From the NCBI RefSeq assembly GCF_006345805.1, contig NC_043023.1, forward strand, positions 16,988,001 through 17,052,000: a DNA stretch of 64,000 bases, in the 5' to 3' direction. Position 1 is the stretch's first letter; the number at the start of each line of letters is the position of its first letter. This DNA comes from Octopus sinensis (taxonomy: Eukaryota). The position numbers and the translations under genes were made by a program. Shown in pieces: positions 4,701 through 49,304 of the stretch. The notes beneath the pieces are model-generated. The model made no database searches, had not been told where the DNA came from, and worked only from the letters and a program-made list of their open reading frames with translations.

Positions 4701-4762
4701 CTATCTATATCTATTAATATAGAGAGTTACTGAGATGACCAGGGTTTCCACAAGTGTTTTAA
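4701..4762 (-). CDS. Gene A terminal coding exon (IKTLVETLVISVTLYINRYR*)
   Basis: Strong acceptor ttttttttcttttcag|TT; phase 1 matches the preceding donor; LVISV.LY is shared with B. Confidence 0.7.
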
Positions 4763-7700
4763 CTGAAAAGAAAAAAAACAATGAAGGAAAAAATAGTTAG
4801 AAAATAATGAGGTTAATTCTAAATTTCTCGATGATCATGATATATATATATATATATAATATATGTGTGTGTGTGTGTGTATATATATATATATATATAT
4901 ATATATATATATATATAGATAATATATAAAACAAATAAACAGATCATCACATACAGACGGATAGGTTCATAGGTTATTGAACAGACAAGCCACACTAGGC
5001 AAATGGAGACTGAAACACATGACCATATACACACACACTCTTTACTTCACACAACGAGACAGAGGTGCATACATATACAAACATAAACGCTAACACACAC
5101 TCATTCATAAAAAATACACAAACACGGACATGCAGAATACATACATACAGATGTACATACATATATACATATGCATATACACACATATATACATACACAC
5201 ATGCATGCATACATACATACATACACACATGCATGTATAGGCACTCACACACATGCACACAAACAAACAAACGGGAAGGCAGTGTAAATAAAGGACAGAG
5301 TCAAAACTACTGAAAAGTTTGCAAGACGCAACGAAAATTTTAGGAAAATAAAAATAAGAAATAAGTGGAAATTTTACCAGTGAGTGTGTTATAATGCACA
5401 AAAAGAAAATCACTGTCCCCAGACACAACAGAATATGCTTCAACACACGAACTCACACAAAGAATCTTGCAAACCAATGTTTCAAAAAAAACAAAACACA
5501 CACGCACACACAATTATACAATCATTTGCACTCAAATCAAGAGGATATGTTTTACTTACTACCATCTTTTTTAAAATAAATATCGTACTTTTCGTCAATT
5601 CCACTTAGTCTTTTGGCTTGTATCCGAGCTTCGGTGGACGTGATATAAAAGTCTGGGTAACTGAAACTAATATATTACAATTCATAAATTAATGCAAATT
5701 ATTACACAGGAAAGTTTTACGACTGTGCTTATAGCAATCAGTTCAGTTTAATGAAATCAACGAGTTTATCATTTCATATTTGATTTTAGAGTTTCATAAC
5801 CAATTTATTCATGAAGTAGAATGTAGAAACAACGTAATTTGGGTAATCCAGGACTTATTGATTTAGCTTCAGTTCGGCTTTGATCAAGGAGATCTGTGGG
5901 TAAAAGTCATTCCAACCATGACAATCCGGTCCTATTTCTTTCGTAGATAGAATGGATGTCGAACTATATCGACCAGCGATAGTACAGTGTTGAATGGAAA
6001 CAAACACAGATTCTTATAGAAAACATGATATTCCATCAACTCCCGCTTGTTCTACACTCAGAATCACGTTTTTTTTTTACTCAATGCCGTGTTTTTAGCT
6101 CTAAAAGACGAAACAGTTGCTATGCAACCCCAACTTGTGTCTACAGGTGTATTTTGAAAAATGGAGATTAGAGATGGGGCGTCAGAATACCGTGGTTCTA
6201 AAATGGAAGTTTTAGGAAACGTGTCTGATACGAATGAGACTCAAATGGCCGTCAGAAAAAGGGCTGGTAAATGTACCCAGCGGCCTTGGGCAGCAGTTAT
6301 ACAGTTTGATGGTGGCAGAAATAAGTTTTAATAATGGTAGAAGAGATACAATGGAGGGACAGCAAGTTGATGGACCAATAATTATACGTGCCATTAATTA
6401 AAGTGGATTGGCAGGGAAAAGATTATTAGCTTAATTTCGAGTGTAAATCCAGCGCAAAAAGTGACCAGCTTAAAGATACAGTTTCCAACCTCATTTTCTG
6501 ATTAAAAAAGCATTTTTATACAATCAAGTTTATGATGGGAAAAGTACGTATGTTAAAAATATGTGTTTCTTTTCACCTTGTATCGGTATTGTTTTTATAT
6601 ATATACTAGCAGAGATACCCGGCCTTGCTCGGGATTAAAATGCCATAGCTTTATATTGTTTTACTTGTTTCAGTCATGTGACTGCGGCCCTGCTGGAAAA
6701 AATCAACTACAGGATTTATTCTTTGTAAGCCTAGAACTTATTCTGCTGGAGTGAGTTTAAAGGACACACACACAGACATTTTGCCATTTATATATATATT
6801 TAATGGCTTTGAACGACCATCCTTGGATGGTTTTGAATGACCATAGAAAGTGCGAGCCCTCTAACTGAAAAATTGTGGATTTGTATAAAGGACACACAGA
6901 CAGACATTTTGCCGTTTATATATAGAGAGATTTCCGGCCTCTGAACTGTGACTGATTTCTTACTTAAAAAATACCAGTAATTAGTTTTTCTCGACGGGCG
7001 AAATGCTTAGCGGCATTTCATCCGCCTTGACGTTCTGAGTTCAAATTCCGTCAAGGTCGACTTTGCCTTTCACCGTTTCGGGGTCGATGAAATAAGTACC
7101 AGTTGAATGCTGGGGTCGATATAATCGACTAGCTGCTAGGATTACTATTATTATTATTGATTGAGAGAGCAGTTCATGCCATCAAAGTGACACGGGGTAA
7201 AATATACGAAGCCAATATACCCATCAGACTACCCGTCTGATAAAGGTAACCAGGCAATGCATCACAACCATATGTGCGCGACATGTGATCTCATATCAAG
7301 ATAAACAGCACATGACCTTGCAGGTGGGGCCAGTTAGAATTTTCTTCAGGTTGAGTAGCCCATCCCGCTCAAACGGTCCCTGAAAAGGGTTGTTTAAGGA
7401 TGTTGAAAGAACCACCCATGTTTCCAGAGGTGAACTATTCAAACCCCAAAGAATCCCTCTCAACACATGGCTATGATGCTCCCCCACTACTTCTATTATT
7501 ATTATTATTATTATTATTATTATTATTACTACTAGAAGGCGGCGAGCTGGCAGAATCACTAGCACTCCGGACAAAATGCTTAGCAACAATTTATTCGTCT
7601 TTACGTTCTGAGTTCAAATTCCGCCGAGATTAATTTTATCCTTTCGGGGGTCGATGAAATAATTAATTACCAATTAAGCAATCGACAATCCCCACCTATC

Positions 7701-48200: not shown

Positions 48201-49304
48201 AATTATTGTACAACAGCAACAAATATGTAGATTGGTTATTCAATGAGAATCATCTTGAAATTCTAAAAATTCATTACCTTGTCAATAGGCATGTCTTCCC
48301 AGTACAAATAAATAGGGCTTTTCTTAAATGAGTTTGGGGTCATCTCAAATACTTTCTGCCAGCTTGTACCTGAATCAGCAATAAAAAATTTAAGTATACA
48401 AACAAGATGTTAACCCTTAAACGGCGAAAAAGTGTTGCAGGAATGTCTGTGACAAACGGACAATAATCGATAAAAAAATCTCTTTTTCATAAATCAAACT
48501 TTTATATTTATTTTTATTAAATTAAGCACAAAAACTAAAATAATTGTTTGTCTTAAACAAATGGAGAAGAATCGGTGCACTTTTTCCATCCAGAGCTAGT
48601 TGAAGCATTATTTTTTTCTGTATTATCTAAAACATCATTTTCAACATCATCCGCTTCATTTGATGATGAAAGAAAATCAGAAAAACACTTCTTCATCGCT
48701 GTTTAAATCATCTATTTACGACTTGATTTCTCCCATTGATAAGGGCCGCTTACGCTTAGGCGCATTTAATTTAGCAGACGCTCGGGCCTCAACTGATGAC
48801 GGCATGGCCACAGTCAAATGACTGAAACAAATAATAGAATGGTAGAATACATACATACATAAATGTGTGTGTGTGTGTGTGTGTGTGTGTGCGTTTGTAA
48901 AACAATTGGGATAATGATGAAAATATAATACAAAAATTAGAAAAAACATGCCAGAAAATTGTGATTTACATACTGTTTCCTGAAAGTAAAATATACGATA
49001 AACACGTGCAATCCTGATCTTTAATTTCTTCGTTGTAAAGCGATCGATGCATATAACACGGGCCATTACAATAGCTAAAATATTGGCACTCATCGCGGGA
49101 AATACACCGAAATGAACATTCTGTAAGAGATGACGCGTATTTAGTAGTTTTATTCTGATCTGTTAAGCATCTTGATGTTGTGGTTTTTCTGAAGAGACCC
49201 TCTCTATTCGTTGGTTCTCCGGCAGTTAGAAGAGTCACGAAAAGCAAAAGTGTCAGAGCTGGCAGAAGAAGAGGAATCGAATGGTACTGAATTGTTGTCT
49301 CCAT
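27175..49304 (-). CDS. Gene B: 5 coding exons, 239-aa secreted PAN-domain protein, paralog of gene A
   Basis: join(49304-48974, 48369-48278, 46297-46155, 36788-36685, 27224-27175); GT-AG, same phases as A. Protein: [239 protein letters not shown]. Confidence 0.78.
27435..30402 (-). mobile_element. Penelope-like retroelement, 5'-truncated, bounded by ~165-bp inverted repeats, in gene B intron 4
   Basis: 504-aa RT ORF 28722-30236 ([69 protein letters not shown]...CPLDGSCL), then a frameshift into [15 protein letters not shown]...STTLASHI...C.LC..E; arms 27435-27599 and 30237-30402. Confidence 0.92.
27881..27961 (-). ncRNA. Type I hammerhead ribozyme in the Penelope 3' region
   Basis: Minus strand: stem I TCCC/GGGA; core CTGACGA; stem II AGGAGGTATTAT/ATAATACACCCCT; GAAA; stem III T-GGCC-A (palindromic TGGCCA); AUA triplet, predicted cleavage after 27885. 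Confidence 0.8.
30825..31210. repeat. ~40-bp minisatellite, ~9 copies
   Basis: Unit tgtgtgttctatatataaatatgtatatataatgtatg. Confidence 0.9.
34387..34473 (+). ncRNA. Type I hammerhead ribozyme in an AT-rich repeat
   Basis: AAC-CTGATGA-GTAACTATATTTA...TAAATATAGTCAC-GAAA-C-ACGT-GTC-GTT; palindromic CACGTG loop III, GUC triplet, 3-bp stem I. Confidence 0.72.
36234..36433. mobile_element. 200-bp hAT-type MITE
   Basis: TIRs CAGTGCTTTTCAAAC / GTTGAAAACCACTG; 8-bp TSD GGGCAGAG / GGGTAGAG. Confidence 0.85.
36685..36788 (-). CDS. Gene B internal exon ([34 protein letters not shown])
   Basis: tttcag|T ... GGT A|gtaagt, 104 nt. Confidence 0.78.
38182..38703 (-). pseudogene. Helitron PIF1-like helicase fragment
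   Basis: [16 protein letters not shown]...[33 protein letters not shown]...CNGTR; no Rep domain or N-terminus. Confidence 0.9.
38955..39460. repeat. ~163-bp tandem repeat, ~3 copies
   Basis: Unit begins ttcgtcctaaaaactttgtatgga.tgaatggttacc. Confidence 0.9.
42531..43995 (-). mobile_element. Dong/R4-clade LINE 3' portion (CCHC finger + restriction-like endonuclease), copy 1
   Basis: 371-aa ORF 42732-43847: MHHPKAD.ERLYL.R..GRGL, CRVC...[31 protein letters not shown]; (TAA)n at both ends. Confidence 0.9.
44220..45515 (-). mobile_element. Dong/R4-clade LINE 3' portion, copy 2 (distinct subfamily, frameshifted)
   Basis: [49 protein letters not shown]; (TAA)n at both ends. Confidence 0.88.
46155..46297 (-). 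CDS. Gene B internal exon (VKLQMSG...[12 protein letters not shown]...TFNN)
   Basis: ttttcag|GTG ... AA|gtatgt, 143 nt. Confidence 0.82.
48278..48369 (-). CDS. Gene B internal exon ([31 protein letters not shown])
   Basis: cag|G ... AAG|gtaatg, 92 nt. Confidence 0.82.
48974..49304 (-). CDS. Gene B ATG exon: signal peptide + PAN/apple-like domain
   Basis: Same acceptor and donor as A; all 8 Cys conserved; one Leu codon deleted in the leader. Confidence 0.88.

Follow-up and report, generated by a model that had tools for sequence, protein, structure and literature searches.

A tandem pair of intact multi-exon genes for predicted secreted PAN-domain proteins in Octopus sinensis

Introduction

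A 64,000-nt stretch of Octopus sinensis DNA (NC_043023.1, positions 16,988,001 to 17,052,000; hereafter the window), which is AT-rich, animal, and full of microsatellites and retroelements, carries two minus-strand PAN-like open reading frames (ORFs; 12448–12861 and 48966–49304) of about 112 aa. Are these ORFs the first exons of complete genes, and if so, what do the genes encode and how have the two copies diverged? An initial annotation of the window had proposed that the ORFs belong to a hidden tandem pair of multi-exon genes, members of a lineage-specific family whose secreted products join a PAN module to a cysteine-free domain akin to an unnamed invertebrate domain. Our analysis shows that the window holds two intact, same-strand paralogues (gene 1 and gene 2) of an Octopus-only family that is typically arrayed in tandem, and it is fairly likely that their predicted products are small secreted, diversifying proteins of binding or recognition. 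The family itself is already in databases, unstudied; new here are its domain relationship and a pattern in which exons diverge faster than introns.

Structure of the two genes

Exons were placed by direct reading and by tblastn with database homologues, followed by assembly by script (Table 1). Both PAN ORFs end at the phase-1 donor GGAAACA/gtatgt (slashes mark splice sites), for which two matches were found against 0.11 expected by chance. Four further exons follow in each gene, as the initial annotation had described; each gene thus has five coding exons (E1–E5), GT-AG introns only, intron phases of 1/0/2/1, and zero internal stops, and all 16 coding splice sites are kept in both genes. Splicing across intron 1 forms the expected N-S-T sequon (AAC A/GT ACA), the four coding indels between the copies (3, 3, 6, and 12 nt) are without exception in frame, and the previously quoted motifs W..VF, SP..L.W..LPI.KV, and FNG.G...SWF are all present in the spliced proteins. 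The coding sequence of gene 2 spans 22.6 kb (26656–49304) because introns 3 and 4 hold 9–10 kb of transposon-derived DNA.

E4 begins at a tandem acceptor whose members lie 6 nt apart (ttag/TTTCAG/TTACCC; 5660–5666 and 36788–36794), and both choices are in frame. The lengths first proposed, 245 and 239 aa, were reproduced exactly with the downstream acceptor. Since annotated homologues, including the NCBI model of gene 1 (P0019), use the upstream acceptor and retain 'NFSYP' ('...TFNNNFSYPDF...'), we take the upstream acceptor to be the one in use, and the five-exon products become 247 aa (gene 1) and 241 aa (gene 2). Isoforms with or without 'FS' are possible given the in-frame tandem acceptor.

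The E1/E2 junction and the overall architecture are backed by four full-length paralogues (P0003, P0005, P0007, and P0008). P0019 (O. sinensis LOC118761433, 123 aa) matches gene 1 at 100% identity between an internal Met of E2 and the end of the overlap in E5, and it reproduces the E2/E3/E4/E5 junctions of gene 1 exactly. The gene structures as modelled are very probably correct. A 28-nt 'exon' after E3 of gene 1 (8001–7974) was rejected, as homologues place E4 and E5 at 5666–5560 and 4762–4701. Acceptor and ORF matching alone, used to look for a shared last exon, returned repeat-derived ORFs only.

In both genes the acceptor tttttcag/GA lies directly before the ATG of E1 and joins in frame a candidate 5' micro-exon, E0, found 6.4 kb upstream in gene 1 and 7.1 kb upstream in gene 2. 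The NCBI model at a paralogous O. sinensis locus (L001) starts with a homologue of E0, which is also present in L003, one of two loci on the O. sinensis contig VCDQ01005258.1. From these matches, E0 is probably part of both genes and would add 5 aa (MNLK-G), giving products of 252 and 246 aa. At the other end, AATAAA signals lie 196 and 336 nt past the stop codon of gene 2, and their positions are conserved in gene 1. E5 has its stop codon at the margin of a (GATA)n/(CATA)n microsatellite (window 4701–4725 and 26656–26665; about 9140 in L002, the other locus on VCDQ01005258.1), and the C-terminal tail differs among copies and assemblies (...LYINRYR, ...LYY, or ...LYS).

Table 1 Features of the window.
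Feature	Position	Strand	Description	Evidence
Gene 1 E0	19159..19171	-	Candidate 5' coding micro-exon (ATGAATCTGAAAG/gtaagt; MNLK and first base of Gly)	In-frame join to E1 acceptor; homologues start MNLKG-MET
Gene 1 E1	12456..12789	-	N-terminal hydrophobic signal sequence and PAN/apple domain (8 Cys); phase-1 donor at end	ORF list, donor motif, script assembly, Pfam/Foldseek
Gene 1 E2	10200..10291	-	Completes N-S-T sequon; C-domain strand W..VF and helix SPIYLYW	Junction agrees with homologues
Gene 1 E3	8082..8230	-	FNG.GT.STSWF core between hypervariable stretches	Junctions identical to NCBI model P0019
Gene 1 E4	5560..5666	-	Tandem acceptor, 5666 or 5660 (the latter gives the 245-aa version)	Homologue tblastn, script assembly
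Gene 1 E5	4701..4762	-	Last β-strand (ETLVISVTLY) and stop codon within (GATA)n microsatellite	Script assembly
Gene 2 E0	56377..56389	-	Candidate 5' micro-exon, identical to gene 1 E0	Motif match
Gene 2 E1	48974..49304	-	Signal sequence and PAN/apple domain	ORF list, donor motif, script assembly
Gene 2 E2	48278..48369	-		Script assembly
Gene 2 E3	46155..46297	-		Script assembly
Gene 2 E4	36685..36794	-		tblastn, script assembly
Gene 2 E5	26656..26705	-	Includes stop codon	Script assembly
Tandem unit 1	3820..25663	.	Gene 1 and upstream block, ~22 kb	Self-blastn
Tandem unit 2	25765..62877	.	Gene 2 and upstream block, ~37 kb; enlarged by insertions 26881–36616 and 37890–45523	Self-blastn
Assembly gap	25664..25763	.	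100 N, exactly at unit 1/unit 2 junction	Self-comparison

Divergence between the two genes

The two window proteins are 78.8% identical. Nonsynonymous (dN) and synonymous (dS) divergence were 0.126 and 0.122, respectively, with a dN/dS of 1.03 overall, 0.66 in the PAN domain, and 1.26 in the C-terminal domain (C-domain), against an intron divergence (K) of only about 0.056. Exons differed at 82 of 723 positions (11.3%), and 3.6 kb of cleanly aligned intron at 194 of 3622 (5.4%; Fisher p=2e-8). From E1 to E5, divergence was 6.6, 6.5, 17.5, 15.9, and 22%. Sliding windows over cleanly alignable blocks, which replaced a comparison with 200 nt of flanking intron that was unreliable where microsatellites and indels break homology, showed a peak of 17–22% at E3 against 2–4% in the adjacent intron, and one of 12–14% at E4 against 3–5%. 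In a neutral simulation with the intron substitution spectrum, the probability of no stop codon was 0.045, and the chance that all four indels would fall in frame is 0.017. Core motifs are invariant and the stretches around them variable. Because exons outpace introns, frames stay open, indels are in frame, and splice sites and poly(A) signals are kept, these data argue against decay and indicate accelerated, exon-centred change in those parts of a predicted β-sandwich that flank its invariant core.

Neutral drift of unexpressed, recently dead duplicates, one or both of the copies having kept its frame by luck and gene 2 being the likelier casualty, would account for a dN/dS of about 1.0, for the equal numbers of differences at the three codon positions, for the lack of an annotated counterpart of gene 2 in the databases searched, and for the bloating of its introns 3 and 4 with about 19 kb of transposon DNA (retroelement and Pif1-like fragments). 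However, drift predicts equal divergence in exons and introns, not a twofold difference with exon-centred peaks; the absence of stops and the four in-frame indels have a joint probability of <0.001; none of the 16 coding splice sites has been lost, and poly(A) signals remain at matching positions; and the core motifs stay invariant amid varying stretches. We consider death of either copy unlikely.

Exon divergence in excess of intron divergence is known from crotaline snake venom PLA2 isozymes and from conotoxins. Those families resemble the octopus pair in having tandem genes, small secreted products (predicted to be so in octopus), and a dN about equal to or higher than dS along with the excess in exons; the proteins are unrelated.

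Tandem units and the assembly gap

The gap at the junction of the two units is intergenic, 0.9 kb 3' of the gene 2 stop codon, past both AATAAA signals, and 6.5 kb 5' of the gene 1 micro-exon, and it is crossed by no exon, intron, splice, or reading frame. Only the placement of the genes as neighbours and the distance between them depend on the scaffold join at this gap. The left contig terminates in a (GATA)n/(AT)n microsatellite, which in copy 2 runs on into unique sequence. Gene bodies are about 92% identical between the units and contain different 9–10 kb insertions.

The pair could owe its appearance to assembly, haplotypes or contigs having been misjoined across the gap, so that the genes are not neighbours or not two loci. 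The position of the gap exactly at the unit junction, the microsatellite at the end of the left contig, the 99.57% identity of an 8.9-kb block adjoining the gap (vs about 92% in the gene bodies), and a similar gap between the units of a paralogous O. sinensis array would fit a misjoin. On the other hand, the gene bodies differ by about 8% in DNA and 21% in protein and carry different transposon insertions, while window and contig differ by only about 0.5–0.9%; VCDQ01005258.1 is 99.1–99.5% identical to unit 1 and 92% to unit 2, which indicates distinct loci. The family also forms same-orientation multi-copy arrangements on this contig, an independent sequence of 60 kb, and on O. sinensis chromosome CM016885.1; in Octopus bimaculoides, its loci adjoin one another in runs. 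An assembly origin of the pair is accordingly quite unlikely, and the idea that the two copies are haplotypes was rejected on their divergence and on the contig comparison.

The 8.9-kb block itself (16771–25663 vs 53989–62877) contains both E0 exons, and neighbouring blocks are 92–97% identical; the near-identity of the block stems from recent gene conversion or unequal exchange, or else from an artefact of assembly. The array on CM016885.1 (17229270–17291719; L001) is paralogous, with about 93% DNA identity, and has two tandem copies with the exon order E1–E4 in both (25451, 27695, 31256, and 31889; 46518, 48943, 51903, and 52522) and a 100-N gap between the units (42209–42308). VCDQ01005258.1, exactly 60,000 bp long and compared on either side of its middle 22 kb, has two gene-1-like copies in the same orientation, separated by about 47.7 kb and encoding identical products, whereas the window has gene 1 and a diverged gene 2. 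The region upstream of L003 corresponds to the gene 2 upstream block of the window (57293–49909, 99.47%) joined to a gene-1-type body; therefore, the array is either mosaic or differently assembled in the two assemblies.

Predicted export and the N-terminal PAN/apple domain

Each product has an N-terminal hydrophobic stretch of about 19 residues (mean Kyte-Doolittle 2.44) followed by T-A-G/E (the slash marking the putative cleavage site), and has no other hydrophobic segment. This segment would direct export of the product, and the three or four sequons per protein would then be N-glycosylated. The stretch might alternatively be an uncleaved signal anchor, making the products type II membrane-anchored ectodomain proteins that act in cell-surface adhesion or as receptors rather than in solution, a view suited by the length of the hydrophobic stretch and by the occurrence of modules related to the C-domain in large cell-surface and matrix proteins (ZP, Sushi, EGF). 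Against it, the residues at -3/-1 are small and the h-region has two prolines, as suits a signal peptide that can be cleaved, a cytoplasmic tail is nearly absent (5–14 residues), and there is no second anchor. Membrane anchoring thus seems quite improbable.

Pfam matches to the N-terminal module were below the cut-offs (27 bits for PAN_4, PF14295; 21.4 bits for PAN_1, PF00024), with 15.8 and 14.7 bits, respectively, for gene 1 and 13.0 and 10.5 bits for gene 2. Most paralogues show such sub-threshold matches at this position too (E 0.0015–0.1). Both structure models, as well as the profile used below, were built from, or headed by, database paralogues. An AlphaFold2 (AF2) model of P0005, which is 56% identical to gene 1, was obtained from a 17-sequence alignment and had a predicted local distance difference test (pLDDT) score of 83.5 and a predicted template modelling (pTM) score of 0.77, with pLDDT 87–94 over the PAN domain and residues 1–32 disordered. 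In Foldseek, its N-terminal domain matched factor XI A4 (2j8j; probability 0.98, root-mean-square deviation [rmsd] 3.1 Å over 78 columns), Eimeria PAN (1hky; 0.96), SML-2 (0.92–0.97), and the HGF N domain (0.94), and PAN/apple matches overall had an rmsd of 3.0–3.4 Å over 71–80 columns. The PAN/apple fold of the N-terminal module, and with it the PAN identity first proposed, is thereby supported by the paralogue model. Each window protein has eight Cys, and C64, C68, C74, C84, and C100 are near-invariant across the family. The apple domains of factor XI and prekallikrein, the N domains of HGF and plasminogen, and the apicomplexan microneme lectins (Sarcocystis SML-2, Toxoplasma MIC4, and Eimeria PAN) share the fold by the same comparison; the window domain differs from these known modules in having 8 rather than 4–6 Cys, a single copy, a different fusion partner, and only sub-threshold sequence similarity.

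The C-terminal domain is a trimmed form of an unnamed module

An exhaustive search with an octopus-only hidden Markov model (HMM) of the C-domain recovered 84 proteins in two groups. The first comprises about 30 cluster representatives that match the whole profile, all of them cysteine-free and from O. bimaculoides, O. sinensis, or Octopus vulgaris (full-length matches to E 1e-79); the window C-domains score 140 and 156 bits over profile positions 1–130. The second consists of canonical modules of about 170 aa with a GC..D.GW motif, from Branchiostoma, Acanthaster, Ptychodera, Mytilus, Argonauta, and Octopus (E 4e-16 to 1e-4). These are often repeated and stand beside EGF, ZP, FN3, Sushi, C-type lectin, TSP1, or D8C domains, or after a single PAN; their layout is W..VF ... 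F.G....WF ... GC..D.GW ... AD.L.I.I, with the motif GGC(P/G)ND(A/R)GW.

In a joint alignment of the trimmed and canonical forms, W, F.G, W, and F are invariant. The window C-domain (about 135 aa) keeps W..VF, P....W..L.I..VK, F.G....WF, F.I, and the last strand, and shows two clean deletions, one of about 30 aa after W..VF (G.G..VYD.W) and one of about 40 aa containing GC..D.GW...C.WE...P..LYS. The GC..D.GW block and the cysteines are gone in both window proteins and in the entire PAN-fused Octopus subfamily. Because both blocks are deleted and cysteines are lacking, sequence comparison places the window C-domain as a trimmed derivative, not a canonical member, of the unnamed module. The initial annotation had likened it to an unnamed domain often fused to PAN or EGF, without its cysteines and GC..D.GW; the octopus-only profile finds that domain, and exactly those features are lost. 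Mussel proteins (Mytilus galloprovincialis and M. edulis P0036 and P0041) have independently lost the GC..D.GW block and kept the N-terminal G.G..VYD block, so loss of the cysteine loop is not unique to octopus.

Canonical modules occur in two settings. O. bimaculoides LOC106872447 (P0101) and Argonauta hians Ahia01_000115700 (P0103) have, like the window proteins, a signal sequence followed by a PAN domain and one module, but unlike them have kept both blocks (G.G..VYD.W of ~30 aa and GC..D.GW...C.WE) as well as their cysteines. This combination of PAN and canonical module is the probable ancestral architecture, as judged from these proteins. In Branchiostoma 'HMCN1' (CAH1238943, P0027), XP_078667427 (P0018; four module+EGF repeats with FN3 and ZP), Acanthaster LOC110983420 (P0028), and an SVEP1-like protein (P0029), the module core is homologous (about profile positions 13–90) and likewise extracellular; unlike the window proteins, these are large proteins of matrix or surface that have cysteines in their modules and lack a PAN fusion.

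A C-domain-only model of the paralogue P0013 (pLDDT 88, pTM 0.82) was an 11-strand β-sandwich with one helix. The structural check suggested at the outset gave a confident fold for a paralogue. Foldseek with the full-length and C-domain models found no match of the C-domain in the PDB at E<=0.001, and matches in BFVD were uninformative. Pfam searches at permissive E-values with window proteins, paralogues, and canonical-module proteins found no family covering the C-domain, and PDB sequence searches with the joint profile and the canonical module gave chance-level matches only; no Pfam family and no PDB sequence relative of the canonical module was found in these searches. A partial match to Pfam DUF7922 (32 bits in total) was seen at residues 459–490 of the amphioxus protein P0018, in the F.G....WF stretch, and in no other member; it could hint at a related family. 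That the β-sandwich and the canonical module are highly diverged fibrinogen-related domains, and the proteins ficolin-like lectins, is very unlikely, since the recurring top Foldseek PDB matches that suggest it (L-/M-ficolin, ANGPTL3, FIBCD1, and FGL1; probability up to 0.95, TMq 0.34–0.45) all have E >=0.037, TM <0.5, and an rmsd of 8–9 Å, no Fibrinogen_C (PF00147) signal appears in Pfam even at E<=5, hhalign of the joint profile with the ficolin-2 domain (verified as Fibrinogen_C, 213.7 bits) gives a probability of 0.07%, and the octopus form lacks the region that would be the counterpart of the ligand-binding P subdomain.

The family in Octopus and its public annotation

Cephalopod genomes contain many lineage-specific gene families of obscure role. 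A search with the spliced window proteins matched only Octopus proteins, all named 'uncharacterized' or 'Apple domain-containing', and the trimmed PAN-fused subfamily was seen only in O. bimaculoides, O. sinensis, and O. vulgaris, in keeping with the lineage-specific family first suggested; the further paralogues expected from a homologue search were found, in Octopus only and in tandem arrays. Full-length Octopus paralogues have 242–249 aa, are 49–56% identical to the window proteins, and are collinear with the same domain order; identity to the aligned family members ranges from 39 to 81% with no rearrangement. O. sinensis LOC118761055 (P0005) and O. bimaculoides LOC106867736 and LOC106880400 (P0003 and P0007; 'Apple domain-containing protein' in UniProt) share MNLKG, the signal, PAN, the linker sequon, and the cysteine-free β-sandwich, and differ from the window proteins in being only 49–56% identical.

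The pair was only partly hidden: gene 2 is unannotated and gene 1 mis-annotated, but NCBI already has models for paralogues of full length and for gene 1 in its C-terminal half. The model for the latter, LOC118761433 (P0019), agrees with gene 1 in E2–E5 sequence and junctions, on contig DNA 99.1–99.5% identical to unit 1, and is without E0 and E1 and hence without the signal sequence and PAN domain. A PAN exon with 100% amino acid identity lies unannotated 2.2 kb upstream on the same contig (VCDQ01005258.1). The tail of P0019 (...LYY) differs from that of gene 1 (...LYINRYR) because the stop codon lies in the variable (GATA)n tract. For gene 2, no annotated counterpart was found in the databases searched, the best matches being 87% identical over 71% and 73% over 96%. 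At L001, the NCBI model LOC118768100 (P0001) is chimeric, joining E1 of one copy to E2–E3 of the next, 21 kb away. These public models are misleading, and expression or proteomic studies using them would miss or misassign the proteins.

Three further models show variant architectures, which are either isoforms or prediction artefacts. P0013 (O. sinensis LOC118762874) joins E0 straight to E2 and skips the exon for the signal sequence and PAN, a skip that is in frame because both introns are of phase 1. P0011 (LOC118764386) has 402 aa with two C-domains in tandem, and P0006 (LOC118768101) reads through the E3 donor and stops in intron 3.

Proposed function

PAN/apple modules mediate protein or carbohydrate binding, and exon-centred acceleration in tandem secreted families is usually tied to host–pathogen, predator–prey, or reproductive interfaces. 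In the proposed mechanism, the exported protein would have in its PAN module a surface for generic binding of proteins or carbohydrates, ligand specificity would come from the variable β-sandwich stretches encoded in E3–E5, and tandem duplication with diversifying selection would build a repertoire, as in immune-recognition, venom or saliva, and reproductive families. A soluble binding or recognition repertoire is suggested because a tandem family within one genus combines a conserved scaffold with fast-changing surface stretches. Candidate arenas may include immunity, saliva and prey handling, mucus and sucker secretions, and reproduction.

Several points weigh against this reading. Taken alone, a dN/dS of about 1 and near-equal counts of differences at the three codon positions (27/28/28) would equally fit relaxed constraint, and given the elevated exon dS, short conversion tracts from other paralogues could account for part of the exon excess. 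The PAN scores (13–18.9 bits) are under the Pfam gathering thresholds (21.4/27), and the structure models are of paralogues 46–56% identical to the window proteins. The E1–E2 junction of both window genes rests on paralogues, as the NCBI model of gene 1 is without E1, and no transcript-derived protein identical to either full-length product was present in the protein collection searched. The hydrophobic stretch might stay uncleaved and serve as a signal anchor. Finally, a literature search by locus names, accessions, and keywords returned nothing on a family of PAN with a cysteine-free module, and no ligand, tissue, or phenotype for any family member.

Being small, probably secreted, tandem-arrayed, and subject to exon-centred acceleration, the octopus family is nevertheless a reasonable candidate for immune, salivary, or adhesive biology. 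The functional reading is a prediction from sequence and touches no open question of long standing. Our comparison also delimits an extracellular module that has no name yet is widespread in invertebrates, and a domain model of it could follow. A wider and rather doubtful reading is that the W..VF/GC..D.GW module is an undescribed ancient bilaterian domain whose cysteine-free, PAN-fused form was amplified in octopus under accelerated exon evolution like that of venom or immune genes; if true, octopuses would possess an unrecognised secreted repertoire (saliva, mucus, sucker, or haemolymph) whose binding surfaces are hypervariable.

Insertions and repeats within the genes

Copy-specific mobile-element insertions lie in intron 4 (26881–36616) and intron 3 (37890–45523) of gene 2 and in intron 1 of gene 1 (10725–12347). 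The first contains a 504-aa ORF (28722–30236, minus strand) with no Pfam match. In intron 3 of gene 2 there are zf-RVT ORFs (42732–43847 and 44663–45130, minus strand) and a Helitron-like fragment of a Pif1 helicase 2B domain (38182–38703, minus strand), and the insertion in gene 1 has retroelement-like ORF fragments (11028–11595, minus strand). Just 3' of E0, the first intron of both genes holds a tandem repeat with a 184-bp period (about five copies, 94–95% identical; 18156–19079 and 55374–56297), whose plus-strand translation is a repeated basic peptide (ORFs 18615–18962 and 55833–56180).

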